Origin: Macrostomum hystrix
Lineage: Eukaryota; Animalia; Platyhelminthes
Direction: 5' to 3'
DNA: 64,000 bases
Assembly (NCBI GenBank): GCA_950097015.1
Contig: CATNEN010000029.1
Span: 2,170,001 to 2,234,000 of the forward strand
Program-made: the position numbers and the translations under genes
The notes under the pieces: generated by a model
Told to the model about the DNA's origin: nothing
Databases searched by the model: none
The model's input: only the letters and a program-made list of their open reading frames with translations
In this document: in pieces, positions 5,963-42,847 of the stretch
Layout: each line of letters begins with the position of its first letter
How positions within the stretch are numbered: position 1 is the stretch's first letter

Positions 5963-6529
5963 TGAATTTTAGACTTCAAGTATAGCGTTAAATTCGCAGA
6001 AAATCTGCTTTTTTATTTAACAATCTCATTTATAATCTAGATTCCAAAGACAAAATCCCATTGAAAGAAATCTGAAATTTTTAATGAAAATTTAGCTGTC
6101 AAACTAAATTTTGATTGGGTTATTTATTATTCAAATGTTCATCGCCGACGCTTTCAAATGGTATTTCTGAAAGTTTTTCACCCTTTCAGAACGCAGCCAT
6201 TAGAAACCCGGAAGCAGAAATTTGTACTTTCGATCAGCTTCTGTACTGAAACGCAGTGAAAGCAACAAAAGTTTTTCGAATTCCTCGTTAGATAGCACAC
6301 AGAAATAAGCAAAACAGCTGCGAAGGGGACATTAGCCACTCGTGTAATGCGTTTCACTCTTCACCAATGGGTCCACTCGGTCGAAAACCCAAAGCACTTT
6401 ATGTATTAAAGGGCCACACGCTTCTCTGTCCCTATCTAAACTATCTCACATTCCAAGTTTTTCCTCTCTCTCTTTCTCTCCTCTGGCTATCTTTCTCACC
6501 CTCGTTACCTCTCATCATCACCACTTTCA

Positions 6530-7140
6530 TTTCTCTCTCTCCCTCTATCTCCCCCTTTATCTCGCACTTTACCTTTCAAACTCTCCCCTTCTCTTTCCTC
6601 TCTCCCTCTCCCCTCCAATCTCTCTCCCCTTCTACCTCTCTCCCCTCCTATCTTTCTCCCCTCTCCCCTCTCCCCTCCTATCTCTCTCCCCTCTCCCCTC
6701 CTATCTCTCTCCCCTCTCCCCTCCTATCTTTCTCCCATCTCCCCTCTTATCTCTCTCCCTTCCTATCTCTCTCCCCTTTCCCTTCTATCTTTCTCCCCTC
6801 CTATCTGTCTCCCCTCTCCCCTCCTATCTCTCTCCCCTCTCCCCCTATCTCTCTCCCCTCTCCCCTCCTATCTCTCTCCCCTCTCCCCTCCTATCTCTCT
6901 CCCCTCTCCCCTCCTATCTCTCTCCCCTCTCCCCTCCTATCTCTCTCCCCTCTCCCCTCCTATCTCTCTCCCCTCTCCCCTCCTATCTCTCTCCCCTCTC
7001 CCCTCCTATCTCTCTCCCCTCTCCCCTCCTATCTCTCTCCCCTCTCCCCTCCTATCTCTCTCCCCTCTCCCCTCCTATCTCTCTCCCCTCTCCCCTCCTA
7101 TCTCTCTCCCCTTTCCCTCGCCCTCCCTCTATTTCTACCC
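6530..7140. repeat. Pyrimidine-rich 23-bp minisatellite (CCTATCTCTCTCCCCTCTCCCCT)n
   Basis: Direct reading; degenerate edges. Confidence 0.93.
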
Positions 7141-8225
7141 CTGTCTCCCTCTCTCTATCTTTCTATTTTACCCAGCTGTCTATGACGTCATTCAATTTGC
7201 ATTGGCAACCTTAATTATCCACATCATTAGGGCTACGCTCCATTCGTGACGGCCAGACTGTAAAGAAAATTAGGGAAATTTTTTGGGGAAAGGAAGGGCA
7301 GGCGAAAAATGGGATCGAAGGACGAGAAGAGGATCCAGTGGAATTGGGGTGGGTGGGCGCCAGCGGATAGGGAAGAGAGTGCGTGCGCAAAACCTGTACA
7401 GCTAGCTACAGCAGGAGTTGATGGTAGTTTGCAGTCCGCGCATATTTATAAGTGTACTCCGTCATGTACGCACACCGACCGTACCAGTGACCGTGGAGAG
7501 GGGGGTGGCGGGTTAGTCTCAGTTCTAGGATTGGACTACATGGTGTAGCAGGAGTAGGTATCGAAACTAGTCCCGGAGACTATGGGGTTAGAAAGCTGCT
7601 CAGACAAGAGGAGTAGATCCTTACGGCCCGGTCTTGCCCTCGTTCCAAGCTTTCCGTGTCCCTATTATTTTTTTCCTACTAATTACTCACGCAAACACTT
7701 AGTTCTCAAGCCGGGCAATATATTGAACGAGTCAAGTAAGTATTATTATAATTATCATTGCTCCATTTTGCAATGCGCGCAGTACTCGGAGCTGACAAAA
7801 GACTAAATGCTTTCATTTCATGCCTGTCTTTGTCAGTTTACTTCGCTTTACGAGTATATTTGACAATTTTAGTCCAAGAGATCTTCTTCAATATCGTCTT
7901 TAGCGAGCCTATAGCTGCCCTTTGAATTGCAAAGTGGATAGGGTAGGGGTATGAGAGGGAACACTGAGATATATTAGACAGTGTGTAGATCGAAAAATAG
8001 AATTGTACACAGCGATAAACACTGGCGAGTACAACTGTCAGCGAGGTGGACTCCACTCCGAGGTTTTGGTATATATTTGATTATGAAGGTTCCGAAGTTT
8101 TTTCCAGTTGGCTTGAAAGACTAGCAGAATTATTTGTCTAACTTTCAACTGCCAAAACAATTCTAATATCTAATTTGAGACTACATGTGAGTAATCTCTC
8201 TGGTTTGTTTTTTAGTTGGAGTGAG

Positions 8226-16343: not shown

Positions 16344-19300
16344 ATGCTCTCACTCGAAGGCGAACTAGCTGTTGCCACCGGGCACAATGGCCCCGGCCTG
16401 CCGCAGCAGCTGCTGTGGGAGTTGGCCTTCGAGCCGGATCTGCGGCCGAGAGCTCTAGAATCTTTGGCCGATATTGTCCGGACCAGAACAGACGGACTTG
16501 GACACCGCGATTTGCGCCAACTGTTCGAGTCCTTGGCATGCGCTCTGCGCGACCCGGCCTGGCGCATCCGCGGCCTCGCCATCACCATTGCAACGGCTTC
16601 ACTAGAACGAAGCCGACAGTTGGCCGTTGCGCACGTCGGAGTTCTGGCGCCGGCGCTCATTCGTTGCCTCGGCGACCAATCGCCCACGAACAGACACGCC
16701 GCCGCCGGCTGCCTGCGTGGCTTCCTGCAGGCTGCCGAAGACGTCGACGCTGGCTCCGGACTGCTAGCGGCTTTGGCGCAGCACGGCGTCGACTCACCCG
16801 ATCCCGCAGTTCGCCGAGGCGCCTGCTTTGCTCTGGCCAATAGTAGCAGCCGGAGCGGCAGCGGCGGGGGTGGCCTTCGACTCCTCCCTCCGCCGGACCA
16901 GCTGCTGCCAGGACTCGACTTCAGCCCGCTGGTCGCTTCACTAGTGCGATGCCTCGCCACCGGTGATAGCGACGACGACGACGAAGAAAATGCCCTTGAC
17001 GTGGATGCCGTGGAAGATGACCAAGATGCGGAGAACGACGAAGACAACGATGAAGATGACAACTCGGAAGAGGATGACGACAGCGAGAGTGACAGCGACG
17101 ACAATTCGGACGAGAACGATGACGACGAAGCCGCAACCGCGTCACCATTCGCAGCTAAGGCGGACCGAGTCTCCAGCAAGCACACGAACGCGGCCACTCC
17201 AATGACAACATCGGAGGCGGCGGCTAGAGCGCTCGAGGTGCTTGAGGTCGGCCTACCGGCTGGCCAGTTCGCCAAATGCGTCGCCCAGCTGAATCCGCCC
17301 CTGCTGCGCTACTATAATTCTCGGCGAGAGAGCCTCGCCTTCGACTGCCTGCCGGCAGAGCCAGTGGCCGTGCTCGAATCTGGCGACGGCGACTGGCGAC
17401 GCCAGGCTGAGGCAGCCGCTGCGGTGGCCGGGGCCATTCGGCTGCTCCGCCGGCCCGAACTGCTGGTGCCGCGCCTGGGGGATCTCCTGCGCTTCCTGCG
17501 CCGCCTGCTCGATCGGCCGGCTGCAGAGGATGTGGATCGAGGCGGAGTTGCTATGGCAACCCTTGAGGCGCTCTACAGCCTGGTGGACCGGCTTGAGCCG
17601 AGCTGTCTGGAGCCGTCGCTGGTGGCGGCTCTTGACTGCGCCTCCGCCAGGCTCGGTTTGGGCGGCCTGGCCGTGCGCCAGGCCACCGCCCGCCTGGCTC
17701 GGCTGCTCATGCAGCGCCACGGCGCCCAGCGCGTCCTTGACAACGGCTACTTGGCTGTCGGCCTGTCGTCGCGTCATTCTCGCGCCAGAGAGGAAGCGCT
17801 TCAGCTGGCCATTCTGGCGCTCATCACCTTCCCCAGCTCGGACTTTGATCTCGGCAGGCTGTGCACCGCGGTGGCGCCGGCGCTGCACGACCACCGGCGG
17901 ACGGTGCGGCGCGCTGCCATGGAAACCGCCGCCCTGCTAGCCCAGGCGCTGGGACAGGTGAGTTCAATCAAGGTAAAATAAAAGGCTGCGTATAACTACC
18001 TGTACAGTCCATGTACTGGTAGTGCAAATTTTCTACACGAGCAATATCTTTCACAACCAAAGTGAACTGAAGCAATAGGGAATCTTCGGCTGAGATTCGA
18101 ACTCTCGACCTCTTTCATCTTAAATACGAGGAAATGGTTTTAAAACTGAAAACAAAAGACTCTCAATCGCAATGATCTCCGCAGTCCCGTTTGCCTTTGC
18201 TGCTCTCGGCTGTGCGGGATTCGGCGGGTCAGCCGCCTGCGGCGCCACCGGCGGCCCTACTGGAGGCGGTCACTTCTAGACTCGGGCGTCGTCGACTGCC
18301 GCGGCTGGCGTCCGACGGTCTTCTAGTAGAGTACGCCGCTGACGACGCCTTCGAATGGCCCGTTGCTGACCGTCTGGTAGATCTGGAAGACCCCGAAGAC
18401 ACTGGTGAGCCTGGATAACAAATGCCGCTTAAAATAACCGATTTCGAAAAGTCTTTCAGAAAGCCTCTGAGAACTGCTTGACAGGCGAAAAGTTCACAAA
18501 TCTAAAAATTCTCGATTCAGAAGAAACGTAGCGAGAATCGAAGCAAAATACCATTAGGACAACCTTGTTAGATATTGTTATCGTGAACAAAAAATAGCAC
18601 TGGAATCGGCGCGGATATTGAACAGAATCTAGTCAACAACGATGGGCAGAATCGAAGCACTAGCCCTAGCTAGAATCGAAGCAAAAGTTTCAGCTAGAAT
18701 CGAAGCAAAAGTTTCAGCTAGAATCGAAGCAGCATCCGTAGCGAGAATCGAAGCAGCAGCCATAGCTAGAATCGAAGCAGCAGCCGTAGCTAGAATCGAA
18801 GCAGAAGCCGTAGCTAGAATCGAAGCAGCAGCCGTAGCTAGAATCGAAGCAAAATTTTCAGCTGCTTCGGAATAGAATCGAAGCAGCAGCCGTAGCTAGA
18901 ATCGAAGCAGCAGCCGTAGCTAGAATCGAAGCAGCAGCCATAGCTAGAATCGAAGCAGCAGCCATAGCTAGAATCGAAGCAAAATTTTCAGCTGCTTCGG
19001 AATAGAATCGAAGCAGCAGCCGTAGCTAGAATCGAAGCAGCAGCCGTAGCTAGAATCGAAGCAGCAGCCATAGCTAGAATCGAAGCAGCAGCCATAGCTA
19101 GAATCGAAGCAGAAGCCGTCGCTAGAATCGAAGCAGCAGCCGTAGCTAGAATCGAAGCAGCATCCGTAGCTAGAATCGAAGCAGAAGCCGTAGCTAGAAT
19201 CGAAGCAGCAGCCGTAGCTAGAACCGAAGCAGCATCCGTAGCTAGAATCGAAGCAGCAGCCGTAGCTAGAATCGAAGCAGCAGCCGTAGCTAGAATCGAA

Positions 19301-22300
19301 GCAGCATCCGTAGCTAGAATCGAAGCAGCAGCCGTAGCTAGAATCGAAGCAGCAGCCGTAGCTAGAATCGAAGCAGCAGCCGTAGCTAGAATCGAAGCAG
19401 CAGCCGTAGCTAGAATCGAAGCAACATCCGTAGCTAGAATCGAAGCAAAATTTTCAGCTAGAATCGAAGCAGCAGCCGTAGCTAGAATCGAAGCAGCATC
19501 CGTAGCTAGAATCGAAGCAGCAGCCGTAGCTAGAATCGAAGCAGCAGCCGTAGCTAGAATCGAAGCAGCAGCCGTAGCTAGAATCGAAGCAGCAGCCGTA
19601 GCTAGAATCGAAGCAGCAGCCGTAGCTAGAATCGAAGCAGAAGCCGTAGCTAGAATCGAAGCAGCAGCCGTAGCTAGAATCGAAGCAGCATCCGTAGCTA
19701 GAATCGAAGCAGAAGCCGTAGCTAGAATCGAAGCAGCAGCCGTAGCTAGAATCGAAGCAGCAGCCGTAGCTAGAATCGAAGCAGAAGCCGTAGCTAGAAT
19801 CGAAGCAGCAGCCGTAGCTAGAATCGAAGCAGCATCCGTAGCTAGAATCGAAGCAGCAGCCGTAGCTAGGATCGAAGCAGCAGCCTTAGCTAGAATCGAA
19901 GCAACATCCGTAGCTAGAATCGAAGCAAAATTTTCAGCTAGAATCGAAGCAGCAGCCGTAGCTAGAACCGAAGCAGCATCCGTAGCTAGAATCGAAGCAG
20001 CAGCCGTAGCTAGAATCGAAGCAGAAGCCGTAGCTAGAATCGAAGCAGAAGCCGTAGCTAGAATCGAAGCAGCAGCCGTAGCTAGAATCGAAGCAGCATC
20101 CGTAGCTAGAATCGAAGCAGCAGCCGTAGCTAGAATCGAAGCAGCAGCCGTAGCTAGAATCGAAGCAGAAGCCGTAGCTAGAATCGAAGCAGCAGCCGTA
20201 GCTAGAATCGAAGCAGCATCCGTAGCTAGAATCGAAGCAGCAGCCGTAGCTAGAATCGAAGCAGCAGCCTTAGCTAGAATCGAAGCAACATCCGTAGCTA
20301 GAATCGAAGCAAAATTTTCAGCTAGAATCGAAGCAGCAGCCGTAGCTAGAATCGAAGCAGAAGCCGTAGCTAGAATCGAAGCAACATCCGTAGCTATAAT
20401 ATAGAATCGAAGCAAAATTTTCAGCTAGAATCGAAGCAGAAGCCGTAGCTAGAATCGAAGCAGCAGCCGTATCTATGAGAGTAGAATCGAAGCAGCAGCC
20501 GTAGCTAGAATGGAAGCAGCGGCTTTAGCTAGCTGGGTAACTCCAGATCCCAGTTCACAGCTGGGCGCGGAACAAATGTTGCAGCAGATTCAGAGACTGT
20601 TAAAGTGCTTTGAATGCTGGAGCAAACACAGCCAGTCTTCTTGATGGCGTCAAAGCAGCTTAAACCAACTCAGCTCATGGTTTGAGCTCCAGTTGTTTTC
20701 TGATGTAGACACAGCAGCAGCTCGGGATGTGGAGTGTGCCAACATACTCCACAGCAAAGAAAAGGATATTTCATGGTTGGGTAAATTTGTTCAATTCTGA
20801 GAATTTTCAGTAAAGGATCGTAGAATTCAGATCTTCAGAATTTTTAATATTTACGATTAGAAGGGATATTAAAAGGTTGGGATTTTCTAAGTTGGAATAT
20901 TTCTAAATACGGATAAGCTAGGATATTTATAACTTGTATAATCAAAAAGATGGGATATTTAGAAGATGGGATATTTAGAAGATGGGATATTTAGAAGATG
21001 GGATATTTAGAAGATGGGATATTTAGAAGATGGGATATTTAGAAGATGGGATATTTAGAAGATGGGATATTTAGAAGATGGGATATTTAGAAGATGGGAT
21101 ATTTAGAAGATGGGATATTTAGAAGATGGGATATTTAGAAGATGGGATATTTAGAAGATGGGATATATTTAATATTTGGATCCGGAGCTGGGATTCATAA
21201 GTTTATTCAGTATTTGGGAGTTACAAAATTTTGATTGTTCTCGGTAAGTCGCAGCAGTTTTATCCCTAAATGAATTCGCAGGAACAGCAGCAAGTCGCAA
21301 CTACAGCGCCGGACGATCGCTCAAGACGGCAAAGTTTCCATGGCAGGAGCAGCTAGAGCAGCAGCAGCAGCAGCAGCCGCAGCCGACAAGCAAAGCCGAA
21401 AATACCTGGGGTATTATTTCCATTTTAATTTCGGATTCTATCATCCAGTGGTCGTAACTATGTCAACACGGGTTTTACCCTAGTGGTTAGAGTGTCGGAC
21501 TCACGACTTAAAGGTCTGGGGTTCGATTCTTGACTCCGCTGTAACAATATGTGTCATTTTGCAAGACGCTTAACTGTGATTTGCCTGAGCACTAAGGCCC
21601 CTGAGCTCGATTCCGCGGCCACGCCACATTCATTTCCCTGTACCATGAGGGCCAACCTCCAAGGCACAGTGAGAAATGACTGACCATGAGAAACTCAGGG
21701 CAGATGTACACACCTGTGTGAGCGTGTGCCTGCTCACGGTATTTGTGTGCGTGTGTGCTCAGGAGTCAGCGAAATGTGGCGAAATGTACGTCGCGCAATA
21801 GCTGCGGCTGTGCTGTCGGCTGCACGTCTGCCACAATTGGGACAGGTTTAATCAATTACTCTGATTTCGATTTTGATTTTCTAAATTGAGAACTTTGAGA
21901 ACTGTTTCTAATATTTTTGTTAAAACAAAGCAATTCCTGTGCAACAACAGAACTGGCACGGTTGCAGTGGCGCCGGTAACTTAAAAGTGCAAAGCAGCGC
22001 CGGCTATTTTTTTCTAACCATTCTTTTTTTGTCTCACTTGGCGACCCAGCTGCACCGGCAAAATTTCGGTGCCTCTCTCCTTCTTTCTCTCTCTCTCCCT
22101 TCTCTTCTGCCAATCGGCAATTCAGCAGCAGCAGTCACAAACACTGCCTTTAAGTCACCCCACCTTTGTCGCCTATGCTGCTGCTGCTGCTGAAGAGATT
22201 ATAGGCGAGTACTTTACTCTCCCATGTCCAGCTAACACTCACCCGCTGAGTTGCACTTGTCTTCCTCAATTCTCTCCCCAATGTTCCTCTCTGCCTCATA

Positions 22301-25300
22301 CACACACTGTGTGTGGTGGCATCTCCTTTGTCTGCTCTCCCCTAGTGTTTCGCCTAGCCGTCAGAGCTTCATGATACTTCATTGTCTCGCATGCCATCTC
22401 AACCAAATTAAGTTTAACCTACCCGTACAAATCTCTAGCATCGATTGGTAGCTAGCTTTATTGAAGATACTATTCTCAATTACTCAATGTTATTCAATTG
22501 TCTCGAATTGTTCCACGTGTACTTTTAAACTCCTGACAACTGTACGCATTCTACCATCTACTTGAGACAAAGAGACAGGGGACTAGAATGAGATCCATTG
22601 AAGGGAGAGGAGATCCATAGAGGGGAGTATTATCCGTGGATATACTCCCCCTGTACCCTGTTATCCCAGTCAGCATCTACTCCCCTCTGTCTCCTGTTAT
22701 CCCAGTCAGCATCTACTCCCCTCTGTCTCCTGTTATCCCAGTCAGCATCTACTCCCCTCTGTGTCCTGTTATCCCAGTCAGCATCTACTCCCCTGTTATC
22801 CCAGTCAGCATCTACTCCCCCCTGTTTCCTGTTATCCCAGTCAGCATCTACTCCCCTCTGTGTCCTGTTATCCCAGTCAGCATCTACTCCCCTCTGTGTC
22901 CTGTTATCCCAGTCAGCATCTACTCCCCTCTGTGTCCTGTTATCCCAGTCGGCATCTACTCCCCTCTGTGTCCTGTTATCCCAGTCAGCATCTACTCCCC
23001 CCTGTTTCCTGTTATCCCAGTCAGCATCTACTCCCCTCTGTGTCCTGTTATCCCAGTCAGCATCTACTCCCCTCTGTCTCCTGTTATCCCAGTCAGCATC
23101 TACTCCCCTCTGTGTCCTGTTATCCCAGTCAGCATCTACTCCCCCCTGTCTCCTGTTATCCCAGTCAGCATCTACTCCCCTCTGTGTCCTGTTATCCCAG
23201 TCAGCATCTACTCCCCCCTGTCTCCTGTTATCCCAGTCAGCATCTACTCCCCCCTGTCTCCTGTTATCCCAGTCAGCATCTACTCCCCCCTGTCTCCTGT
23301 TATCCCAGTCAGCATCTACTCCCCTCTGTGTCCTGTTATCCCAGTCAGCATCTACCCCTGTCTCTCTTATCCCCATAAAGCAAAGGACAATGAGCTCTGG
23401 TTCGCTAAATCCCCTTTTGGCAGTGACATCCCAGCTGTTGTTCAGCGAGCCTTAACCAGCAAAAGTGACCGGAGTAAAATGTGCGCTCTCTCCAATCTTG
23501 ATGGGGTGGGTGTAGTGCGTCCGTTTCAGCAGCGAAAAAGCTTTGCAAACAAGGCCTGCAACTGCCCCATACCCCTCTGTCACAGAGTAGAAGTGAGATC
23601 AAACATAGGGAGTGTATGGCCGCAGACAGAGCGGGAGACATTGTGTGTGAAGAGACTAGAATTAACCGGAACAATGCACTGTCCCGATTCTGGTATAGCC
23701 AGGTAAACGCTCGATTAGACTTGGCCCAGAGCTTCTGTTTTGTGGGCATTTTTCTTGGAAAAAATTTACTTTCCACCTGTTTGTATCGACGAAAATCACG
23801 TTCTATTTATAGTCTGTTTTTGTTAATTTTTGTCTAATTCGCTCATTTCAGCTACAGTTCCGCAGACAGCTGCCCAACCAGAGGATGCCCTGGTGAGTTT
23901 AGCATGCGTGCACAAAATTAAACCTATTTTTTCTTTGCTGCCTACTTACCACTAGGTCAGTAGAGCACTTAGAATGTACGAGCTGCTTATTCCACCCCAG
24001 CCCGCAGTAAAACAGGCCAGACAGCCGGGAAACTCAGCATCGAGGCGCAAAGCATTTAAACTGTTCGACGAGGCTGCGAAACAACAATCGGTTGGGGTAA
24101 AGTGAGTGCTGCTAGATGCTCCGCATGGCCCTTTTAAACGGTTAAATAATTCAGATTGGATCACAGACAATCATTCTCGATAATCCACTGACATTGGATC
24201 ACAGACAATCATTCTCAATAATCCACTGACATTGGATCACAGACAATCATTCTCGATAATCCACTGACATTGGATCACAGACAATCATTCTCAATAATCC
24301 ACTGACATTGGATCACAGACAATCATTCTCGATAATCCACTGACATTGGATCACAGACAATCATTCTCGATAATTCACTGACATTGGATCACAGACAATC
24401 ATTCTCGATAATCCACTGACATTGGATCACAGACAATCATTCTCGATAATCCACTCACATTGGATCACAGACAATCATTGTCGATAATCCGCTGACATTA
24501 GATCACAGACAATCATTCTCGATAATCCTCTGACATTAGATCACAGACAATCATTCTCGATAATCCTCTGACATTAGATCACAGACAATCATTCTCGATA
24601 ATCCGCTGACATTGGATCATTGTTGTTATTTTACAAATTGTTATTTGTCAATCAAAGTTGACGACAACTCTGACCTCGATAACCCATGGTGTCCCCACCT
24701 TCAGCAGCAATCCATTGTACACTAGCCGCAGCGTTCGTCGTTCAGCCGACTACACTCTGTTGCCGTCTCACATGCATCCGCAACAGCTGCAGCAGCAGCA
24801 TCAGCAGCAGCAGGGCCCACGTGATCAGAACCAGCAGCATCAGCAGCCGCAGGTCAAGATGCCCCGCAGTGGCCCAGTAGGCAGCAGGCCTAGTCTGCAG
24901 CAGATGATTCAGCTGACGATGGACGCTGAGCTTGATGGCCCGGTGGCTGACCGGGTCATGCGAGGTAAGCTTTGTTTCTCATGGAGACAATTGGCAAATA
25001 GACAAATGGACACAAGTGTTTACGGGGTGTACAATCGGTTGACTGACATACAATCCTGGGTGTACAATCGGTTGACTGACATACAATCCTGGGTGTACAA
25101 TCGGTTGACTGACATACAATCCTGGGTGTACAATCGGTTGACTGACATACAATCCTGCAGGGTGTACAATCGGTTGAATGACATACAATCCTGGGTGTAC
25201 AATCGGTTGACTGACATTGACTTATCTTGATTTGACTTATCTGCAGGGCGGTCCGACGGACGCAGCGGGGAGGCGGGAGTCGCCCATTCCGCTAATCCCT

Positions 25301-28300
25301 GAAAGACCCGCAATCGGCCGATGGCGCGGGACCAGTAAGGGAGGTCCGTGTTCGGTCCTTCCTGCAGCTTGTTCCTCGCTGGGGAAGAAAGAGGCTCGTC
25401 TGGTAGCCCTTAGGAACCGGACGAGCCGCGGGATGTTCTCGGATCTGCAAACATCGTCCATGGATGGGTTTGGTCCGAGGTGATTAAGCCTCTCTCTGGT
25501 GAAGAAAGGGCAGTGGCAGACGAAGTGCAGGGCATCCTCGTCCTCAAGGTTGCAGAAAGGGCACAGCTCACTCCGGAGGTCTCCACGGAGGAAACAGTGT
25601 CTGGCGTAGCAGCCATGGCCCGTGAGGGTCATGGTGAGGGCCCGGATGTCCTTCCGGGTCTGGTTCAGAAAGACCTTCCGGAGCCGAGCGGATGGCACTG
25701 GAACTGCCGCTTTGGATTGGCGGCAGTTAGTGGTGCTTCTCCACCGGGTAAGATGGAGGTTGGCAGTCCAATCATTAATCTGACGATAAATGACGGTGCT
25801 CGGAATCGGAGCCGGGGGGGAGGGGCCCGGCGCAGAGCTGGCTCCTCCCTGCTTGGCCAGGTGGTCAGCAAGCTCGTTACCAGGGAAACCGGCGTGCCCT
25901 GGTATCCACTGAAGTCTGACGGTATTCTTACCGGCCAGGTTATTGAGCTGCCGGACACAGTCGGAGACTGTCCGGGAGGTTGTGGTGGTGTGACAGAGGG
26001 CTTGCAGAGCAGCCTGACTGTCCGAGTGAAAGATGATAGTCCTGCCTGAGATGTTTTTCTCATTCAACTCCGCAGCGCAGGAGCTGATGGCCAGGACCTC
26101 GTTCTGGAAAACGCTCGAGGATTTTCCAGTGTGTTGGGCGTGTGTGGCGACAACACGTCCGTTGATAAGGATACAGACCCCGAAGCCAGCGGAGCCATCC
26201 TTCATGGATCCGTCCGTGTAGCAGTGGACCTCCTGGGTGTTCCAGTGGTCGCTAACTTGGTCCCTGGTGGGGATGAGAACCTTAAAGCGCTGAAGGAGGT
26301 TGAGCGAGCACGGTTCACCGTCCGTAAGGACATTGATTCCGTTGCTCGCACCCAAGTCTCTCAGGCAAAGGTCCGTGTGCGGCAGGAGCTTTCGCTTCGC
26401 TGCCGCTCGTTGGGGGACGAAACGCACACCGGCATCAAGGAGACGCCGGGCGGTTTTTGCCGCCTCCCCGCGGATAAAGATATCGAGCGGGAGGATGTTC
26501 AAGAAGGCGTTGAGGCCATCGAAGGGGGCGGATGGCGGGGCGCTCATGATCGTCCGACATGCGCGACCTTGCACTCTCCGAAGAGTCTCATGGCAGGTCT
26601 TAAGCTGCAGGGCACTTGCCCAGATCAGTCCGGCGTACGAGACAGCCGGCCTGACCATAGCAGTGTAGATCCACCATAGGCGTTTGGGGGTGAGACCCCA
26701 CGTGTTGCCCACCGCCCTGCGCAGCTGCGCCAGGATCGCAAAGGCCTTTTTGGCTTTGGCATGGACATGAGGAGTCCAGCTGAGCCTGTGATCGAGCGTT
26801 ATGCCCAGGCATTTAGTTTGCTTCTAGAAGGTGATGTCCTTTCCATACAACTGCAGGGGGCGAGGTTGACTGACATACAATCCTGGGTGCACAATCGGTT
26901 GACTGACATACAATCCTGCAGGGTGTACAATCGGTTGACTGACATACAATCCTGCAGGGTGTACAATCGGTTGACTGACATACAATCCTGGGTGTACAAC
27001 AGCTTGACTGACATACAATCATAGGTGTACAAGTGTTTGACTGACATACAAATGTATAGTTATGTGGGGTGTATGACCATTCTTCCCAAAATACAAATAT
27101 ACTTGTGTGGGCTGAACTACACACAGACGGAAGCAGCCAAAAAAAGGCTATAAAGTGTCTGGATAAACCATCTTATCCGATAGGCCAGTATACAGGTAGC
27201 ATCAGAAGTGGTCAAATATGCGTCGCCACAGCATCTTTACTAGCGCGAGTAGTGTCCTCAAATCTATTATTATCAGCTGCTCAGCTAAAACAAAAAAGGA
27301 AATAGTTGCTATCGCCGCTGCTCTCTCTATAGTCGATGAGGCTTCATTCATAAATTAATCCCATCTGCTGCTGGCACGCTTAATTATTAACGGGATCCTA
27401 CTCCGGGTCAAACAACAGAAATCAGTTTATAAGCGCACAGCTGTGATTTAGGTAGCTTCTAAAACCAGTGAGCCGAGGACTGCGTTGGTTGCCAAGGGGA
27501 ATGGACTCCAGTCTAACCGCTGTACCACTTCAGCTGAACCAACAACAGCGCAGAGCTCTTCATAAAGCCGCTATCTATGAGCAGCGGAATGCAGTGGTAG
27601 ATCCCCAGTGTGCGATGCCCAATGCTCGCGGTAAATGCCATATTCTCATCCTGCATGGCTCGTATCCAATCACAAATCTTAGAGCTCATAGAGGCGACTC
27701 AGTCTGTACTACTCTCTCTATCTGTGAACAGTGAGCAGGTGGGACTTACTCTCTGCGTGCTCACTGCGCTGTTGCGTGCGAGTATAGAGAAAAAGCAACG
27801 CAAGCCTTGTAGAATAGAGGCCCCCTGTTGCTTGTTTTGGCCTCTTTATCACAAAGAGAGAGCTTTCTTTCGATCAGTCCTCCAGTCAAAAGTGACTAAA
27901 AGAGGGCAGAAGAAGCGAGGCGTTGAGTGGTCCGCTCGCCCTCGCCCAGGCTGACTTCGCTACAAAAGTGCCGGCAAAGAACCGCCGACAGCATTTATTG
28001 TTTTGCGTTTCACTGGCCTACAAAAGTCTGCCTATAGAAGTAAAGAAGAAAGCACACAGCCAGGTGAAAGAGAGGAAGAGAGAGCGTAGCATCGGGACTT
28101 TCACCACAAATGGTGAAACAAGACGACCAGTTGAGCGCTACAAAATGCTGGACCAACTCTCAGTGCCGAATTGAGCAGTCTCCCTTCAACACGCCAGTGA
28201 GGAGGTGAGGAGAAAAATAACTTCAATCCCCACTCCGAGATGGGCTGCGGCTCATCGAATGTCGCCAGTCCAACTCGTCGACGAGCTAGCGTTGCGGCCG

Positions 28301-29504
28301 GCAACGGCAAGCAGCCTGTGATGGCGACACCGCCGCCGCCTCCGCCGCCTCCGCCTCCGCCTCCGCCTCCGCCAAAGTCGGCATCACCGCCGCTGTCGCG
28401 TCAGCAACCGCAGCAAAGTCGGCTACCCTTGCCAGCTAAGGCAGCTACTTCCAGCAGAGACAGCCGAGTCTCCAGTGGAGAAAGCGCCACTGAGAGCAGA
28501 GAAGAAGCTGCAGGGGAGAAGCTGCCTGGCCATGGTTTTTCATTAAGTTCAGCGACGCCACTTCCACCGGTGCATCCGGCTCCGCCTCCTCCGCCGCCTT
28601 TGCGGATGCCGCCGCCGCCGCTAGAATCAGTTGGCGAGGCAACCCAAACTGCCAGTAAATCTCTACCGCTTTCATCCAGGCTTCAGTTTCAGTTTGTAGA
28701 TGGGAAGAGATGGGAATTCACAAGCCCCAGTCCACCTAGCAGCTAAGTTCGTGTACATGGAGGAGTTCTGGGGCGAGAAGCGCAAATGCAGCGAGTGTAT
28801 GATTTCAAAGCATTTTTACACTCCACCTTGTCCCCTGCTAATGATTAGAGACAGATAGACATCAACGGGAAATGTATAGTTGGGATTTAGGAAGACCTCT
28901 ACTGCAGCCACTCCTATTGTCTCTCTTTGCATTTGATCTACTTTTCATACCCTCCCCCGAAAAGGTTCGGAATGGGTTGGAGAGGATGACGAGAGTGAGA
29001 CTGAGCTCGCCTGTTTCACGTTGCAGTTGATGAAGCAAATCTGTGCTCACACGCTCTCTATTCCTACACCCACCTACTCCCGTGCAGACAGACAGGCATT
29101 AGTTAGAATGCAAATCAATCGATTTGACCCAACAACTTGCATTGCTGTGCTCAGCTCACCCACACACACACTCTCTACGATACCAAGAGAGGTGAGGGTG
29201 GGCGATGGAAATAGAATTACAAAGAGAGGCAGACAGCCAGACAGACAGGTCAGTGAGAGCAGCGCGTCAGATCCTCTCTCTAACCCTCTCGCTCTCGCTT
29301 TGTAATTTCCTCCATTTGAGCCCTCGGCCTGCAGTAGCATAAAAGGCTGCCATATTGGGGAAGAATTGGGGAATAACGAAGACAAAGGTGAAGTGAGCGG
29401 TGGAAAATTTTTTATAGGGCCAGGTTGAGAAGAGAAATCACGCATCGTTTGACTGCAAATGTAGCTGCAGTGCCTTCTGCTTGGCAGGTTTCTATCCTAG
29501 TCGT

Positions 29505-29550
<46 letters not shown>

Positions 29551-29597
29551 TGTCGATGGCGGCTGGCGGACTGAGGGGAGGCTCCGACACATTCCAG

Positions 29598-29632
<35 letters not shown>

Positions 29633-30710
29633 ACAGCAGCAACAGCAGCAACAGCAGCAACAGCAACAGCAGCAGCGGTTTGGTGCTGGTTCTAGGCAGA
29701 CTCAACAGTCTAGCGGCGGGTTTCTCAACGATACTACAGGTGAGAATTCGGAGCCTCTTTACCGAATTAAAAGAAAAACTAGGAACGCGTTCGTTCAAGC
29801 GAAGAGTCTACTAGAAAAATATAATTAAGTACTAGATTAAGTTATCGATTTAGAACATAAAATTTGCCCATTGTGAGTGAGTTCCTTATCAACTAGTCGA
29901 TCAGCTCATCAATAAATAATAGTTTTTTTCAGCCAGTCAATTAGCTTATCAGCCAGTCAATTAGCTTATCAGTCAGTCAATTAGCTTATCAGTCAGTCAA
30001 TTAGCTTATCAGTCAGTCAATTAGCTTATCAGTCAGTCAATTAGCTTATCAGCCAGTCAATTAGCTTATCAGTCAGTCAATTAGCTTATCAGCCAGTCAA
30101 TTAGCTTATCAGTCAGTCAATTAGCTTATCAGCCAGTCAATTAGCTTATCAGTCAGTCAATTAGCTTATGAGCCAGTCAATTAGCTTATCAGCCAGTCAA
30201 TTAGCTTATCAGCCAGTCAATTAGCTTATCAGCCAGTTGATTTGTTTTTTGATTCTGGAAGTTGTTTTCATCGAATAGAAAGGAAAATTCTAGGCCGTGT
30301 TCTGGATTTTCATAGCGATTGGTTGAATATTTTAGGAGAAACGTAAAAAATATAAATGTGGCTATTCGCAACACCCCCGTGATCTTTCTACTGTTAAGCT
30401 ATCACGTATCACTTCGTAGTAAAGTAGAGTAAATGCATCGCCATCTACGTACCAGCCGCCAGTTGAACTCAAATCCCTGACTCGCCCTTCGCCGACTCAC
30501 TTCAGCTTCCAGTCAGCCGCAGCCGCTGCCGGCATCCAGGCGCCAGCCAGTGAAGGCGGAGCGTCGCGGATTCGAGCTGACCCTGGGCCTCAATTCTGAC
30601 GATGATGACGACAATGACGACGCCAGGAATGGGCGACGACTCAGCCAGGGTGTTGGCAGGGCGCTGAGGCGCCAAGAAAGATCGCTGCCTGCACTGCACA
30701 CTGGCGAGTT

Positions 30711-30763
<53 letters not shown>

Positions 30764-33700
30764 GGCGGCAACAGCAGCCAGATGCTGACGCGGAGATAAT
30801 ACGAATCCTGCATGAAGTGAGTCAAATTTTCAGCAAGAACAATGAAAATTTAGTCAGTCAGTCAGTCAGTCAGCTCTTTCGCCACTCCGCAGGAGCAGCT
30901 GGCGATATCCAGGAAGCACTCGGAGCTGGTGGCATCGGAAGACGCATGCTGGAAGAAGCCGAGAGCCTCAACAACTGGGGCGAGCAGACGCGTGTCCGAG
31001 GGTGAGCAGCAACTACTCAACTCGCAGATTCTAAAGTTCAACTGGAAAATGTATTGCTTATTCATTTATTGCTTCAACAGGGATTGCGCCACCTCAAGTT
31101 GCCTTTTCCACTGGGGCTGGCGGCGGTAGCATCGGCGGCAGCGGAGGCGGCGGCGGTGGAGTCAACACAAAGCGGCACTCGTTGCAGGCAGCCGCAGCCG
31201 CAGCCGCCACGCCGCGCCTGCCCTCAATAGCCGGCAACAGCCGGGCGGACCCGGACGAGGCGCTGCTGGCATCGAATCCAGAGCGCGCGCTGGACGAAGC
31301 CATGCAACGCGTGACCTCCGAGGACTGGGAGGCGAAGTGCTCCGGCCTGCAGCTGCTGCAGCGGCTGGCATCGAAGCACCAGCTCGGGGCCGGAGTCGGC
31401 CGCGACCTGCACAGCCTGAGCGTGGCCCTCCTGGCCGAAGTGAAGAACCTCCGCTCGCAGGTGTCTCGCCAGGCCCTGCAGACGCTCTGCTCGGTGCTGC
31501 GCTCGGCTGGCCGACGCATGGAGCCGGAGCTGGAGGCCTGCGCCAAGGTGCTGCTGCAGAAAACTGGCGACACCAACCGGTTTATTCAGGGCGACTGCGA
31601 GGCCGCCCTGCACGAGCTGGTGGCGTGCGGAGCCAGCTATGGCCGGGTGATGGCCGCCCTCCTGGCTGGCGGAGCCGAGCACAAGAGCGGCCAGGTGCGC
31701 GCCGTATGCGCCAGGTGCCTCTGCGAGCTGTGCGAATTGGGCGCCGGCGCCGGCCGGAGCAAGCTGGCCAGGGACCAGCCAGACAGGCTGCTGCCGGCCT
31801 TGGCCGTCTTCTGCATGGATGGCGGACAGGAGACCAGGTGATTGATAGATTGAATGTCCAGCCATTCGAGAGCTTTCGTAATAATATTAATCAAATATAA
31901 TGTTTTTATCATTATACTCGTACTCGTAATTTTGGGCTGCGGGCAGTGGCACATCATTTGGTGACACTAGACCTGCAGCCAGCGAGGAGGCAATTCTGTC
32001 CATTTCGGTGACTCCTGAGCACACACGCACACAGATACATGGCCCTCGAAGGCGTAAATTGCACGCCAAGCCCCCAAGCCTTCTCTCTGCGGCTGCAACC
32101 CAAATGAATGTGGCCACGCCGCAGAATCGAGCTTAGGGCCTTGGTGCGAGAGGCAAACGCGATAACCACTCTGCCACTCGCCCCTCTAAGCTGCATGCAG
32201 CTGTCCAGTCCATGGACTGGGGCACTCACTCACTCACAATCTACTTCAAAAGTGCAATAAATTTTAAATAACTAGGAGTGTTGGCAACTTCAGAGGATAA
32301 TGCAATCAACTTGTATGCAGTTAGCGAGGAGACAATTCTGTTGACCTCTGAGTACACAACCCAATACACAGAAAAATGGTACCAGGCACACAGACACATT
32401 CTGAAAGATTTCGTGAGCACTTACCGGGCATTAGGGGCGTGAGTGGCAGAGCGGTTAACGCGTTTGTTTCACGCTCCAAGGTCCCTGAGCTCGATTCCGC
32501 GGCGAGGCCACATTCATTTGGGTTGCAGCCGCAGAGAGAAGGCTTGGGTGCTTGTCGTGCAATTTACGAGATTGCACATTGAGATTGTACACTGCCCTAA
32601 AAGTCAGTGTGCCTGTGTGTGATATCTGTGTGCGTGTGTGCTCAAAACTGCCTCCTCGTTGGCTGCGGGTCTAGTGTCACCAAATGATGCGCCATACCGC
32701 GCAGCTCTCCAGTATATATTATTGTTATTACCCGACCTGAACTCATTTCCAGATACTGGGGCCGTCGGGCGCTGCATCCGCTGCTTGAGCTGCCCGACTT
32801 TCAGAGCCTGTGGTCAAAGCACGTGAGCCAGAGTGTGCAGCGCAGCATGGCGGAAGTTCTGGAAAATCTGCGCTCCCGCGGGCCAGGCGAATGTCCGCCC
32901 TCGGTGGCTCTGGCTGCTGCTGCGGCGGCTGCGGCCCGGCGTGGTCAGTCGGCCGGCGGCGAATTCGGAGACGGCCTGCTGAAGCAACAGGTCAGCCTGC
33001 CAGGACAGCAGCAGCCGGAGTCGCCTCAGCCGGTGCCGTTCACCCAGTCGGCTCCTGTCAGCGGCTATCAGGCCACTAGAAAGGCGGTGGGGGGCGGAGG
33101 CGGTGTCGGCGCCGGCGGCCGGCCGACCGAGGCGGCAGCGGAAGAGGTGAAGACAATCTGCGCCAGACTCGCGGCCAGCGACTGGCGCGAGCGGCAGGAG
33201 GGAATCGAGCGGCTCAGCCAGATGGCCAGGCAGAGGCCGGACCTGGTCGGGCACTTTGTTGTCAAGGTGAGGCCCGGCCTGCCAGTTGGCTGAACTTGTT
33301 TAAGTCCAAGTCGGACGGCTGACTAAGAATTTTTTGCTCAATAATATTAACCGCAAGTGGACTGGGGAACACTGGCTACAATCAAACTGCAGACAGTGTG
33401 GAGGAAATTTCGCCCATCCCGCTGATTCTTCAGCACACACGCACACAAATAATTTACGCAGGCACACGCTCACACAGGGTGTGTACATCTGCTCTGGCTT
33501 TCTTATCGTTAGGCAGTGTACACTCTCAATGTGCCTTGGACCTCGACAAGCTCCCAAGCCTTCTCTCCGCGGCTGCATCAAAAATGACTGTGGCCTCGCC
33601 GCGGAATCGAGCTTAGGGACCTTGGTGCGAGAGGCAGTCCCTGACATGGAGCTTGAAGCCCATTGGTTAGAACTGCATACTTCGGACCAAAAGGTCATGA

Positions 33701-34519
33701 GTTCGACTCTCAGCCGAAGGGAAAACAGTTTGTCCCCGAGCACGACAACTGATCCCCGTTGTTTCAGTTCATCCAGCTGTAAAAAAAGTACTAGCCTGAG
33801 CTTTCACAGTCCACGGACTGGACAGTTGTACACAACGCAATGCCAAATCCCTGTCTCCCGTCCAGCTGATCGACGCGTTCGCGCCGAGGCTGCAGGATTC
33901 GAACTCGAAGGTGCAGCAGCAGGCGCTGGACGCGGCACAGTCGCTGGTGCCGCAACTCGCCAGCACCGGCCGGTTGGGCGCTACCGTCGGCGCCCTGGTG
34001 GGTCAGGCCGCAATGGCTCTGGCCTCCAAATCCACGGAGATCGCCTGCTCAGCTGGACTCCTGCTGGACTCGCTGATTCGACGCGGCGAGCCGGAACGCC
34101 TGGCGCAGCCGCTGGTGCAGGCCGTCACTTCGGCCAGTCCGCGCTGCCGGGCCGAATTAGTCGAGAAGCTCGCCGACCTGTGCGAACGGCTGCGCAAGCC
34201 GAAGCCGGCCCAGCTGCACGTGGAGCCGGAGCTGTTCCGCCTGCTGGCCGGCCTCACCACGGCGCAGGGTGGCGGAGGCTCGGCGCCTCTCCGCCTGGCC
34301 GTGTTCCGATTGGCTCGCGTGCTCCACGGCCTGGCCGGACCCGAGCTGCTCGATAGAGCCCGCCTGGCGCAGTCGGCGGCTGGCGTCGCTGGTGGAGTCG
34401 GCGCCAGCGGAGGCGGAGGCGTCGGTGCCGGTGGAGGCGGCGGCGGTCGCGGCTGGATCGTCCTGCTGGAGGAGGCCCTGCGGCCTGGGGCGCCAGCAGC
34501 CGCAAGGGGATTCTCTTGA
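16344..34519 (+). CDS. TOGARAM1: TOG array regulator of axonemal microtubules (TOGARAM1/FAM179B/crescerin/CHE-12), four TOG domains, ~1659 aa
   Basis: Exons 16344-17957, 18185-18404, 20709-20780, 21282-21410, 23852-23892, 24658-24964, 29488-29739, 30506-30816, 30893-31001, 31081-31837, 32753-33266, 33866-34519. All GT-AG, phase-consistent, 4980 nt. Matches family motifs FDLGRLCTAVAPALHDHRRTVRRAAME, SRLGRRRLPRL..VEYA, SAGRSLKTAKFPWQE, EDWEAK..EVKNLRSQVSR, RYWGRR, SDWRER and DAFAPRLQDSNSKV. The small linker exons are less certain. Confidence 0.9.
18055..18115 (-). mobile_element. Fragment of a tRNA-derived SINE variant (related to 33655-33785)
   Basis: Reverse complement has B-box GAGTTCGAATCTCAGCCGAAG followed by TTGCTTCAGTTCAC. 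Confidence 0.5.
18640..20520. repeat. 24-bp minisatellite (GCTAGAATCGAAGCAGCAGCCGTA)n in TOGARAM1 intron 2
   Basis: ~75 copies with variant units that recur in blocks. Confidence 0.96.
20947..21166. repeat. 16-bp minisatellite (AGAAGATGGGATATTT)n
   Basis: Perfect tandem copies. Confidence 0.97.
21467..21860 (+). mobile_element. Composite SINE: family B head and CORE-like part, family A body, family B tail
   Basis: 21467-21590 matches the B head, ~21596-21780 matches the A body, and ~21790-21860 matches the B tail (CGCGCAATAGCTGCGGCTGTGCTGTCGGCTGCAC..GGGACAGG). Confidence 0.8.
22650..23356. repeat. 36-bp minisatellite (CTGTTATCCCAGTCAGCATCTACTCCCCTCTGTGTC)n
   Basis: Tandem copies in TOGARAM1 intron 4. 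Confidence 0.96.
24155..24618. repeat. 38-bp minisatellite (TTGGATCACAGACAATCATTCTCGATAATCCACTGACA)n
   Basis: Tandem copies. Confidence 0.96.
25025..25217. repeat. 33/36-bp minisatellite (GTGTACAATCGGTTGACTGACATACAATCCTGG)n, left part
   Basis: The same unit resumes at 26864 after the LINE insertion. Confidence 0.93.
25218..26863 (-). mobile_element. 5'-truncated non-LTR retrotransposon (end of RT + RNase H + CCHC), I/R1 group, Loa/Lian-like
   Basis: Minus-strand frame KCLGITLDHRLSWTPHV..GNTWGLTPKRLWWIYTAMVRPAVSY; RNase H motifs YTDGS, FQNEVLAI, HSDSQAAL, WIPGH..GNELADHLAK; C-terminal CPFC..H..C; one in-frame TAG near 26825; short repeated 3' tail (AGATAAGTCAA); apparent 13-bp TSD GGTTGACTGACAT. 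Confidence 0.93.
26864..27049. repeat. 33/36-bp minisatellite, right part
   Basis: Same unit as 25025-25217. Confidence 0.93.
27469..27630 (+). CDS. Possible additional 162-nt phase 1-1 exon of TOGARAM1 (VSRGLRWLPRG...PNAR)
   Basis: AG at 27467-68 and GTAAAT at 27631; open and in frame between exons ending 24964 and starting 29488; no recognised homology. Confidence 0.3.
28240..28654 (+). CDS. Candidate alternative first coding exon of TOGARAM1 (MGCGSS..., polyproline-rich)
   Basis: ATG is 40 nt after an in-frame TGA (28198-28200); GC-rich exon-like composition; phase-1 donor GTAAAT at 28655 is compatible with acceptor 29488. Unspliced ORF ends at 28746; 3' boundary uncertain. Confidence 0.6.
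29930..30237. repeat. 20-bp minisatellite (AGTCAGTCAATTAGCTTATC)n
   Basis: Tandem copies. Confidence 0.96.
31935..32183 (-). mobile_element. SINE family A copy with tRNA-like head
   Basis: Reverse complement has A-box GAGTGGCAGAGTGGT, B-box-like GCTCGATTC, body and tail. Confidence 0.88.
32435..32712 (+). mobile_element. SINE family A copy
   Basis: GTGAGTGGCAGAGCGGTTAAC..GAGCTCGATTCCGCGGCGAGGCC..CTAGTGTCACCAAATGAT. Confidence 0.9.
33400..33636 (-). mobile_element. SINE family A copy
   Basis: Reverse complement matches the family A body. Confidence 0.88.
33655..33785 (+). mobile_element. tRNA-derived SINE variant related to family B
   Basis: TGGTTAGAAC..GAGTTCGACTCTCAGCCGAAG..CAGTTCATCCAGCTGTAAA. 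Confidence 0.55.
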
Positions 34520-40238: not shown

Positions 40239-42847
40239 TTATGAGGATCGGCCATAGACGTTTACGTAGGGCTGGTGACGCAGTGTGAAGGCGGCTAGAA
40301 TATTGCGGGCGATCTGCAAGCTGCCAAGACTGGCTGCCAGAGCTTGGCGCGCCTCGGCATCCGAATGACCGTCGGCTAGGAGGGCGCGCACCGACAGCTC
40401 GTCGATGGGACTGGCCGAAGCAGCCATAGCGGCGGGGGCCGCAACACTGGCAGGAGCTGCGGTAGCAGGAGCAGCCTGGCGCGGCGGAGGGGGCGGCGAC
40501 GCGGGACGGGGCGAGGCGGCCCGAGAGCTGCCCGCTGAAGGCGAGGCCGATGACGAAGGATCAAAGTGGAGAGTCGCGTATGTGAAGCTGCCGTTTCCAG
40601 CAGCATCTCCAGTGGAACGTCTGTCGTCGTCGTTGTCACTGTCGTCGTCGGCGGAAGCGGCAGCTGAGGCGGCCGCAGCGTTGGCCACAGCGGCGGCGTT
40701 CGGGCAGCGGCGCGCCGATGCCGGTGAACTGCCTGTGCGAGGCGGCCGCGGCGGTGGCGAGGGCGCCTGAGCGGCAGACGGCGGCGGAGGCGGTGGCGAT
40801 ATTGTCGGAGGCGGAGGAGGCGCCGTGAGAGAGACCAGCGGCTCCGTAGCGGGCATGAAAGGCTCTAAAATGACAGCCTCTGTGCCTTTAATCTCGCGCC
40901 GACAGAACGGACAGATGAGATCCTCCTGACAGTGGGATGACAGTCTGGAGACGCACTGGGCGCACATGTAGTGGCCGCAGGGTTCGATTCGCACCTCCTT
41001 GTCTCGCTCCATGCATATCTTGCACAATTGAAACGACTGATAAGTGGCATTCTTAGTGCTGCAGTACATTTCGTATTGCTGCTGCGTGACCTGGATGACA
41101 ACAGGCGGCAGGTCGTGAACCAAACTAGATAGATCCGGATTGATGCTGTTACCGTCCGGATACAGATAGAACATATCCCTGGCGCCGTCAATGAGAGCCT
41201 GGGCCAATGATTTGTTCTGTATGATGGTCTGCAGAATCTGGCGGTCGTCAGTGACGTACCCGATGGCCCACTGGCCCAGCTTGGTGCAGCTCTGCCTATA
41301 GATATAGGCGCCAGGCTTTTCAATCTGCTTCAATAGTCTGGTCCGCACTTCGTCGTAGGTTAGAAAGGCCATATAGCCAGGATGGGTTACTGCTAGTCGC
41401 TTCCAGTTCTGCAGGATGTTGCGCCACGGCTGGAACAAGCGAACAAATACGTCGAATTCGAATACGGACACGTGATCGTTGCAGGTGAGGTCGATTGTGG
41501 TCCTCAGAGCCATTAGTTCCATGTTGTCCCTGATGGGATGCACATCAGTGAATGCCATGCTGAACTCCGGCCAGGAGACAATGCCCCGGCCGGGGAAATA
41601 GTGGCGCCAGAACTCATCTGCATCCACCTATGTATGGAGATGTTTTTATAAGATCTTAGTCAGTGAATTGGATCTGTCGAGTACAAATAATATTAATGAC
41701 AATTGCAGGAGGGCCCACTATTTGGTGACACAAGACACGCAGCCAGCGAGGAGGCAATTCTGCCCATTTCGCTGACTCCTGAGCACAAACCCACACAGGT
41801 GAGTACATCTGCCCTGACTTTCTCATCGTCAGGCAGTGTACACTCTCACTGTGCCTTGGAGGTTGGCCATCAAGGGCTTCAAGCGCACTCAAGGGCCCTC
41901 AATGTCCCTGAACTCGATTCCGCGGCGAGGCCACATTCATTTGAGGCGCAGCCGCGGAGAGAAGGCTTGGAGGCTTGTCGTGCAATTTACGCCCTTGAGG
42001 GCCAACCTGCAAGGCACTGAGAAAGTGTACACTGCCTGACGACGAGAAAGCCTTGGCAGATGTACACACCTGTGTGAGCTTGTGCCTGCGTATAGTATCT
42101 GGGTGCGTGTGTGCTCAGGAGTCAGCGAAATGGGCAGAATTGCCTCCAAATAATGTGACAGTGCTCACAGCCGTCCTGCAAATAAACCATTTATAATTCT
42201 GTCACACTATAATGCAAACCGCCAGGACGCACCTTTGTGACGCGAAAGTCGGACAAATCGTACACTTTGTTAGGAAACAGAGCCTGTAAATCTTTCAGCA
42301 TGTGAGAAAATGTCAGAGACAACTTAGTCAGCTGCTGTCGGCACTCGGAGGTCTCATCGAACATGCGTTCCTTGGCCTCTCTGAATAGCCGAACAGTCTG
42401 CTTGCATCGCGCGGTCAGGGTGGCAATGAACAATGGGAAATAATCGTTCTCTGATAAGGCGTGATAATCCTCCGAGTATTTGGACACAATGCTGTTGATA
42501 TACTCTGCCGTATCCGGTATCGTGTCTGGCAGGTAGGGCGGAGAATTTTTCAAATTCAACTGCGGCTGCCTGCACAGCTTCATCACCTTGGCCATATAGG
42601 TGGTACACTTTTCAATGGACTTTTTATCAACAATCAGGCAGCGATTGGCTGCGGCGCCGATTGGCGCGGCTGGCAAGGGGCCTGCGGAGGCAGCGGCGCC
42701 AAATGAGGAGTCGCTGGTGGATGCTGCACCGCCGCTTCTAGGATGGAAGGCTCCATGCAGGCGGGCCAGAAAGCGCCGGCCGCTGCTGTCGGAGGCGGCG
42801 CCGCCGCCTGTAGCTTTCACTGCCATAGCGCGGGCGGCTCTTTTCAT
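40239..42847 (-). CDS. CBL: E3 ubiquitin ligase Cbl (TKB, linker, RING, Pro-rich region, UBA-like C-terminus), ~667 aa
   Basis: Exons 42847-42233 and 41627-40239, phase-0 GT-AG intron. Motifs [84 protein letters not shown]. Confidence 0.96.
41705..41878 (-). mobile_element. SINE family A 3' half in the CBL intron
   Basis: Reverse complement matches family A from GGCCAACCTCCAAGGCAC to the tail. Confidence 0.88.
41905..42148 (+). mobile_element. SINE family A copy in the CBL intron
   Basis: GTCCCTGAACTCGATTCCGCGGCGAGGCC..GGAGTCAGCGAAATGGGCAGAATTGCCTCC. Confidence 0.9.

Follow-up and report, generated by a model that had tools for sequence, protein, structure and literature searches.

A candidate intronic first exon with a Met-Gly-Cys start in a crescerin/TOGARAM-family gene of Macrostomum hystrix

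Crescerin proteins and the flatworm locus

Crescerin/TOGARAM1, encoded by a Joubert syndrome gene, controls the growth of axonemal microtubules, and the function of its TOG3/TOG4-only paralogue, TOGARAM2, is poorly understood. In CLASP2, which belongs to another TOG family, alternative first exons reportedly vary the number of TOG domains, and one of them is said to carry an N-terminal palmitoylation motif. Crescerin2/TOGARAM2 (FAM179A) is a protein of about 1000 amino acids in which an extended disordered N-terminal region precedes TOG3- and TOG4-like domains, the only TOG domains present (PMC4642858, PMC11541697). In mouse Crescerin1, the linker-TOG3-4 part binds to the lattice of microtubules, TOG3 and TOG4 together speed polymerisation in vitro, and the first intra-HEAT loop bears a tubulin-binding determinant (PMC4642858). 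The isoforms reported for TOGARAM1 are nearly full-length proteins (195.6 and 189.4 kDa; 10.1101/817213), and the literature searched contains no internal-promoter, TOG3/4-only or lipid-anchored TOGARAM1 form. Here we describe a locus in a 64,000-nucleotide (nt) stretch of the genome of the flatworm Macrostomum hystrix (contig CATNEN010000029.1, positions 2,170,001 to 2,234,000; hereafter the window, to which all coordinates refer). By its sequence matches, the locus is a gene of the crescerin/TOGARAM family, and one of its introns contains a transcribed exon at 27764-28654. On balance, this exon is best explained as an alternative first exon of the crescerin/TOGARAM1-like gene, from which a short form made up of linker, TOG3 and TOG4 would be produced.

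The long form predicted for the locus resembles Crescerin1/TOGARAM1/CHE-12 in that a long linker separates an N-terminal TOG pair from a C-terminal one, and its TOG2 matches the mouse domain. The predicted short form, at 1003 residues, has the layout of Crescerin2/TOGARAM2. However, Crescerin2 is a separate gene in vertebrates, whereas the short form here would arise from an alternative first exon of a four-TOG locus; moreover, no acylation signal on TOGARAM2 was found in the literature, and the head encoded by the flatworm exon is without a detectable homologue. In function, the short product would probably correspond to the linker-TOG3-4 part of Crescerin1. What would be new here is the intronic first exon of a four-TOG locus as a route to such a protein, together with a candidate acyl anchor.

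Transcripts across the exon

Transcripts were sought in X2-X5, four small runs from a single study, and in X1 and X6, two runs from another; the library type of the runs is unrecorded, and the data are assembled contigs. X2-X5 contain 53-72% of the words of 27950-28760, of which X1 and X6 hold small shares, and 77-93% of the words of the TOG3 exon. The contigs of X2, X4, X1 and X6 were compared with 24660-30650 (5,991 letters), skipping the repeats at 24773-24818, 28320-28381 and 29494-29683 (CAG). X2 and X4 behave as RNA, because the match of contig X4#11 begins exactly at the acceptor of an upstream exon at 24705, with 143 preceding letters that map elsewhere and mark it as spliced, and because both runs have zero depth over the intron stretches 27260-27660 and 28660-29460.

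The alternative exon is transcribed and its donor is spliced. Genome-colinear contigs without loose ends (X4#16, 27764-27960; X4#17, 27935-28301; X2#9, 28017-28319, with 42 further letters inside the skipped proline repeat; X1#2, 28094-28319) define a transcribed 5' leader at 27764-28239 on the + strand, and the leader contigs pass unbroken through an in-frame stop, a donor-like GTGAGG at 28205 and the AG that precedes the ATG at 28240. Since this colinear cover extends from at least 27764 and uses no acceptor, the exon looks like a first exon with its own start. At the other end, contig X2#10 spans 28382-28656 and continues with 28 letters that depart from the genome, so that its exit coincides with the predicted donor (28654-28656); the two letters by which it overruns 28654, GT, are also those with which the exon at 29488 opens. 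The intron after the alternative exon (28655-29487, +, GTAAAT ... CAG) has zero contig depth at 28660-29460 in any run. Use of the donor at 28654/28655, which the original prediction had proposed, is borne out by this exit and by the empty intron. Two further donors that had been allowed for, at 28205 and 28797, are unused in the contigs seen, which are colinear through 28205 and leave 28660-28859 uncovered.

The same prediction had placed an internal promoter at about 27050-28200. Its part from 27764 to 28200 proves to be transcribed leader, and the putative promoter region narrows to 27170-27763 (+), which is without contig cover (no depth at 27260-27660 in X2 and X4; cover starts at 27764). 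Another contig lies at 26970-27169, beside satellite sequence.

The way in which X2#10 ends bears on the exon that follows. Its overhang past 28654 is 30 letters long, and X2#9 and X2#10 overlap by 30 letters (28332-28361). The contigs are taken to be built from 31-letter words, the length that the index samples, and both figures are one letter short of it (k-1). An overlap of this size is typical of adjacent nodes on a single path where the graph is interrupted by a repeat. X2#10 may end k-1 past the junction because the sequence beyond the donor has a second predecessor, which would fit an exon at 29488 that is reached from 28654 and from the upstream exon end at 24964, or from unspliced RNA.

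The only contig over the exon from the second study, X1#2, takes in part of the leader and the first 80 bases of the coding part and differs from the genome at 3 of 226 positions (about 1.3% diverged). Otherwise X1 has only a piece of a retroelement here, a pattern that looks like RNA rather than genomic DNA. The sole coding change in X1 is synonymous (ACT>ACC at 28275), and the start of the frame and both upstream ATGs are unchanged; as evidence of constraint, this is very weak.

The predicted short form and its surroundings

The open reading frame (ORF) within the exon has the properties that had been described for it. It occupies 28240-28746 (+), with an ATG at 28240, a stop at 28744-28746 and 168 codons beginning MGCGSSNVAS, and an in-frame TGA at 28198-28200 lies 39 nt 5' of the ATG. 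The donor GTAAAT, whose GT is at 28655-28656, ends the exon at 28654 in phase 1 and leaves a coding part of 415 nt (28240-28654, +; 138 codons and one base, an open frame contained in part in X2#10). The same hexamer is also present at 20781, as had been noted, where it likewise follows an open frame in phase 1. The ATG stands in a strong Kozak context (tccgagATGG, with G at -3 and at +4). GC content is 50% in the leader, 65% from the ATG to the donor and 48% in the following intron, with steps at the ATG and at the donor, and the value of 65% resembles that of the GC-rich coding exons of the crescerin-like gene. The 138-residue head is of low complexity, with 37 Pro, 19 Ser and 16 Ala; a run of 15 prolines occupies residues 31-45 (28330-28374, +, with a CCGCCT repeat at 28333-28373), and a second proline-rich stretch, PLPPVHPAPPPPPPLRMPPPPL, is read in translation from 28558-28623 (+).

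Joining 28654 to the exon that begins at 29488, behind the acceptor AG at 29486-29487 (...cttggcag), yields the junction codon A|GT (Ser), followed by FYPSRQQQ. The resulting model consists of seven exons at canonical GT/AG sites (28240-28654, 29488-29739, 30506-30816, 30893-31001, 31081-31837, 32753-33266 and 33866-34519, all on the + strand), 3012 nt in total, and would encode 1003 residues with a single terminal stop, the length that had been claimed for the in-frame join. This product, composed of the head, the linker and two C-terminal domains, rests on the modelled 28654^29488 joint; the other six exons of the model would be shared with the four-TOG gene, and all six acceptors are cAG. 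The first of these six exons (29488-29739) encodes a polyglutamine linker and is the proposed acceptor for both 24964 and 28654, since both joins are in frame. The upstream canonical exon of the four-TOG form (24705-24964, +, from X4#11) is also in phase 1, with a donor GTAAGC at 24965, and its predicted in-frame join to 29488 supports the claim that the ORF lies inside an intron of a TOGARAM1-like gene. The exons at 30506-30816 and 30893-31001 encode further linker; both come from the gene model, and the former has canonical splice sites and contig depth at 30460-30650. TOG3 is encoded at 31081-31837, and the exon at 32753-33266 contains linker and the start of the putative TOG4, including the loop ASDWRERQEG. 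The last exon (33866-34519), which has Atlas TOG clusters among its neighbours, encodes the remainder of this domain and then the stop.

Membership of the crescerin/TOGARAM family, as originally proposed, is supported at both ends of the gene. The first coding exon of the long form (16344-17978, +) contains TOG1 and most of TOG2 according to HEAT matches and to a match of residues 398-538 of its ORF with 5dn7 (FAM179B/crescerin-1 TOG2, mouse; E 2.6e-18). The TOG3 exon scores above the Pfam gathering thresholds for CLASP_N (2.5e-7) and CEP104-like_TOG (3.8e-7), and its Atlas neighbours include a 'TGRM2 protein' cluster. The first intra-HEAT loop has its Trp in both C-terminal domains (HR-A loop motif SEDWEAKC in TOG3, ASDWRERQ in the last domain). 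The last domain is probably TOG4: its Atlas features lead to XMAP215_CLASP_TOG clusters (score 0.95), and a fold predicted from the single sequence is an all-helical repeat (pLDDT 64). Other searches with this region gave little; Pfam at E 10 returned a weak HEAT match (0.039) and none that was significant, Foldseek found nothing at E <= 0.001 but placed CLASP TOGs among its weaker rows, and both a PDB sequence search and BLASTP against TOG2 gave weak matches.

Under the alternative-first-exon reading, transcription would start at an internal promoter within the intron between 24705-24964 and 29488-29739. From the donor GTAAAT (28654|28655), the exon would most probably join the shared exon that begins at 29488. 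The first AUG of this mRNA in good context would be that at 28240, which would open the 1003-residue frame. The product would consist of a disordered, proline-rich head of 138 residues, the polyglutamine linker, TOG3 and TOG4, and a four-TOG locus would in this way give rise to a Crescerin2-like short form.

The MGCGSSN start (28240-28260, +) is, as a pattern match, a candidate signal for N-myristoylation at Gly2 and palmitoylation at Cys3. That it follows the N-myristoylation consensus had been claimed, and it does fit the PROSITE-type pattern G-{EDRKHPFYW}-x(2)-[STAGCN]-{P}, with a Cys at position 3; among the 86 ATG-started frames of at least 100 residues in the window, MGCxx[ST] is unique to this ORF. 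The first four residues, MGCG, are identical to those of Lck. In RP2, Lck, Fyn and calflagin, myristoylation of Gly2 and palmitoylation of Cys3 together direct the protein to the ciliary or flagellar membrane (PMC6678300), and the likeness to these proteins consists of a motif match at the Met-Gly-Cys start, the remainder of the protein being unrelated. If Gly2 were myristoylated and Cys3 palmitoylated, linker-TOG3-TOG4 would be tethered to a membrane, which could plausibly be that of the cilium or of the periciliary region. On our own reading, RRRAS at residues 13-17 may be a basic cluster with a kinase-type site beside the anchor, and the proline runs resemble tracts that bind profilin, SH3 or WW domains. 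In the literature searched, no report of acylation of crescerin/TOGARAM itself was found, only the use of an artificial PalmMyr tag (10.1101/817213).

The intron that contains the ORF (24965-29487) also contains a reverse-transcriptase/RNase H fragment, an ORF of 491 residues at 25237-26712 on the - strand (Pfam RNase_H, 5.4e-14). The same 33-bp tandem repeat lies on both sides of it (25025-25217 and 26864-27051), and the element appears to be multi-copy and expressed, because its contig depth is 4-10 times that of neighbouring exons. The intron after the shared polyglutamine exon contains a 20-bp tandem repeat at 29929-30237 (15 copies, 96% matches) and, at 30260-30400, a segment with a contig depth of 77-117, many A-rich loose ends and a 110-bp skip (30267>30378) in X2 and X4; this segment looks like an abundant expressed short repeat, similar to a short interspersed element or a miniature inverted-repeat transposable element. 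In the crescerin linker, polyglutamine tracts of roughly 15, 27 and 23 residues are specified by long CAG/CAA runs at 29505-29676 and 30711-30778. Rfam has no match between 24000 and 31000. Elsewhere in the window, a single-exon ORF of 462 residues at 40239-41627 (-) has E3 ubiquitin ligase CBL clusters as Atlas neighbours (score 0.94) and a low-complexity C-terminal half rich in Pro, Ala and Ser.

Alternative readings and implications

Several observations weigh against the alternative-first-exon reading, and in particular against a translated and acylated head. The 28654^29488 joint is absent among the joints listed, in a comparison that skipped the CAG repeat at 29494-29683. The contigs over the exon come from one study, plus one small contig of another, and are assembled from libraries of unrecorded type. 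Two upstream ORFs precede the ATG at 28240 in the 476-nt leader, one of 32 codons with a weak start context (28110-28208, +; pyrimidine at -3) and one of nine codons (28145-28174, +), and the depletion of upstream ATGs is not significant (P = 0.21). Met28 and Met122 are in frame and could serve as alternative starts without the motif. Under the scanning model, ribosomes on a transcript that starts 5' of 28240 should reach this ATG and make the MGCGSS product, apart from those diverted by the upstream ORFs, and leaky initiation at Met28 or Met122 may occur. The myristoylation pattern alone is not rare, being found at 3 of the 86 ATG-started frames mentioned above. The codon log-odds do not favour the frame, and its GC content at third codon positions (0.54) falls short of that of neighbouring coding sequence (0.70). 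An exhaustive HMMER search for relatives of the 138-residue head returned seven weak matches, three of which (P0002, P0005 and P0006) were inspected and align along proline-rich or low-complexity sequence only, none of them starting with Met-Gly; the absence of relatives says little, as the collection seems to lack the source species.

Searches for the loci of relatives gave distant sequences. A first word search was overwhelmed by matches of low complexity, and a second returned matches of 38-45% identity on contigs shorter than 1.4 kb. A metagenome scan found a single distant marine contig (L001), in which a Met-Gly start frame is absent from the 7 kb upstream of the TOG exon. This contig is 7.7 kb long and AT-rich, and its crescerin/CLASP-like TOG exon (6416-7360) shows 40% identity over residues 50-114, with the motif VALLAEVKNLRSQVSR identical.

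Much of this would suit a reading in which the transcription is cryptic or repeat-driven and has no role for a protein: it would start near the retroelement and satellite (25025-27051) and use a chance donor, and the ORF would be a by-product of GC-rich, low-complexity sequence. Dinucleotide shuffling leaves the 138-codon frame open in 6.4% of cases (P = 0.064) and some frame open in 18%, so that the exon has no more than a moderate coding signal and the evidence against chance is modest; the exit of the transcript contigs at the predicted donor is the stronger support. The codon usage, the lack of homologues of the head, the upstream ORFs and the contig beside the satellite all point the same way. 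However, the phase of the downstream exon requires just this open frame, which begins with a strong-context ATG; the rise in GC content is confined exactly to the stretch from ATG to donor; the exon appears in X2 and X4, and its leader and first coding bases in X1, from a different study; and the sole coding difference in the diverged X1 is synonymous. Transcription of this kind is considered unlikely, while being the rival that survives best.

A second reading divides the locus into two genes, with a TOG1-TOG2 unit that ends separately and an adjacent Crescerin2-like gene, MGC-linker-TOG3-TOG4, whose first exon would be 27764-28654. Separate crescerin genes with only TOG3 and TOG4 exist in many species (PMC4642858). 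The frame of 24705-24964 stays open past the donor, up to 25230, and the 24964^29488 joint, in frame in the model, is absent among the listed contig joints, the stretch 29494-29683 again being skipped. Against this division stands the good GTAAGC donor of 24705-24964, which is in phase 1 and fits 29488 exactly, and the ending of X2#10 at k-1 past its donor is as expected for a next exon with a second upstream partner. Nor is a terminal exon or stop evident for a gene that consists of the upstream part only, and two genes appear rather improbable.

Trans-splicing, which we regard as very unlikely, would affect the start itself. If a leader ending in AUG were added at the AG of 28238-28239, or at another acceptor, the upstream ORFs would be removed, and AUG-AUG-GGC would encode Met-Met-Gly, which would not be myristoylated. 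A pyrimidine-rich stretch and this AG do lie immediately before the ATG at 28240. However, the acceptor would be gAG, the least favoured type, as opposed to the cAG of all six acceptors in the gene model, and the contigs are colinear across the site, with no loose end listed at 28240, although assembly tends to drop short tips.

Slightly less probable still is that the exon is internal to the long transcript, as a poison or cassette exon. Its acceptor would either lie 5' of 27764, which would add stops, or be one of the weak AGs at 28200-28204, in which case the cassette would be in frame and 453 nt long. In favour of this, an exon that began at 28202 or 28205 would keep the frame and have a length divisible by three. 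In three runs, however, the contigs are colinear through 28200-28240; the leftmost contig begins at 27764 without loose letters and not behind an AG; and the candidate acceptors are without a pyrimidine tract. A cassette with its acceptor at 28239 was rejected, since phase 1 from 24964 would read GAT GGG CTG ... and reach a stop after 16 codons, as was an antisense transcript, since the break at 28655 is a GT on the + strand with no CT for a minus-strand acceptor.

The alternative first exon of a four-TOG gene is thus the reading that we retain. The original prediction had gone further, to two isoforms from one locus; of this, transcription, the colinear leader, use of the donor and the gene family are supported, and the acceptor, the promoter, the AUG and the lipidation are what we infer. 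More tentatively, the locus might make two products, a four-TOG regulator of the axoneme and, from an intronic promoter, a dual-acylated polyproline linker-TOG3-TOG4 protein tethered at the ciliary or periciliary membrane, so that a membrane-anchored functional counterpart of vertebrate TOGARAM2, with a TOG pair that binds the microtubule lattice, would be obtained by promoter use and not by duplication; we consider this possible but doubtful. If the head were untranslated or non-acylated, the exon would be an ordinary alternative 5' exon. If, on the other hand, one invertebrate locus provides both forms, the division between N- and C-terminal TOG pairs would predate the vertebrate duplication or would have arisen independently of it, and the locus would offer a single-locus system in which each form may be knocked down on its own. 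Anchoring a TOG pair by a lipid would represent a new coupling of the ciliary membrane to axonemal microtubules.

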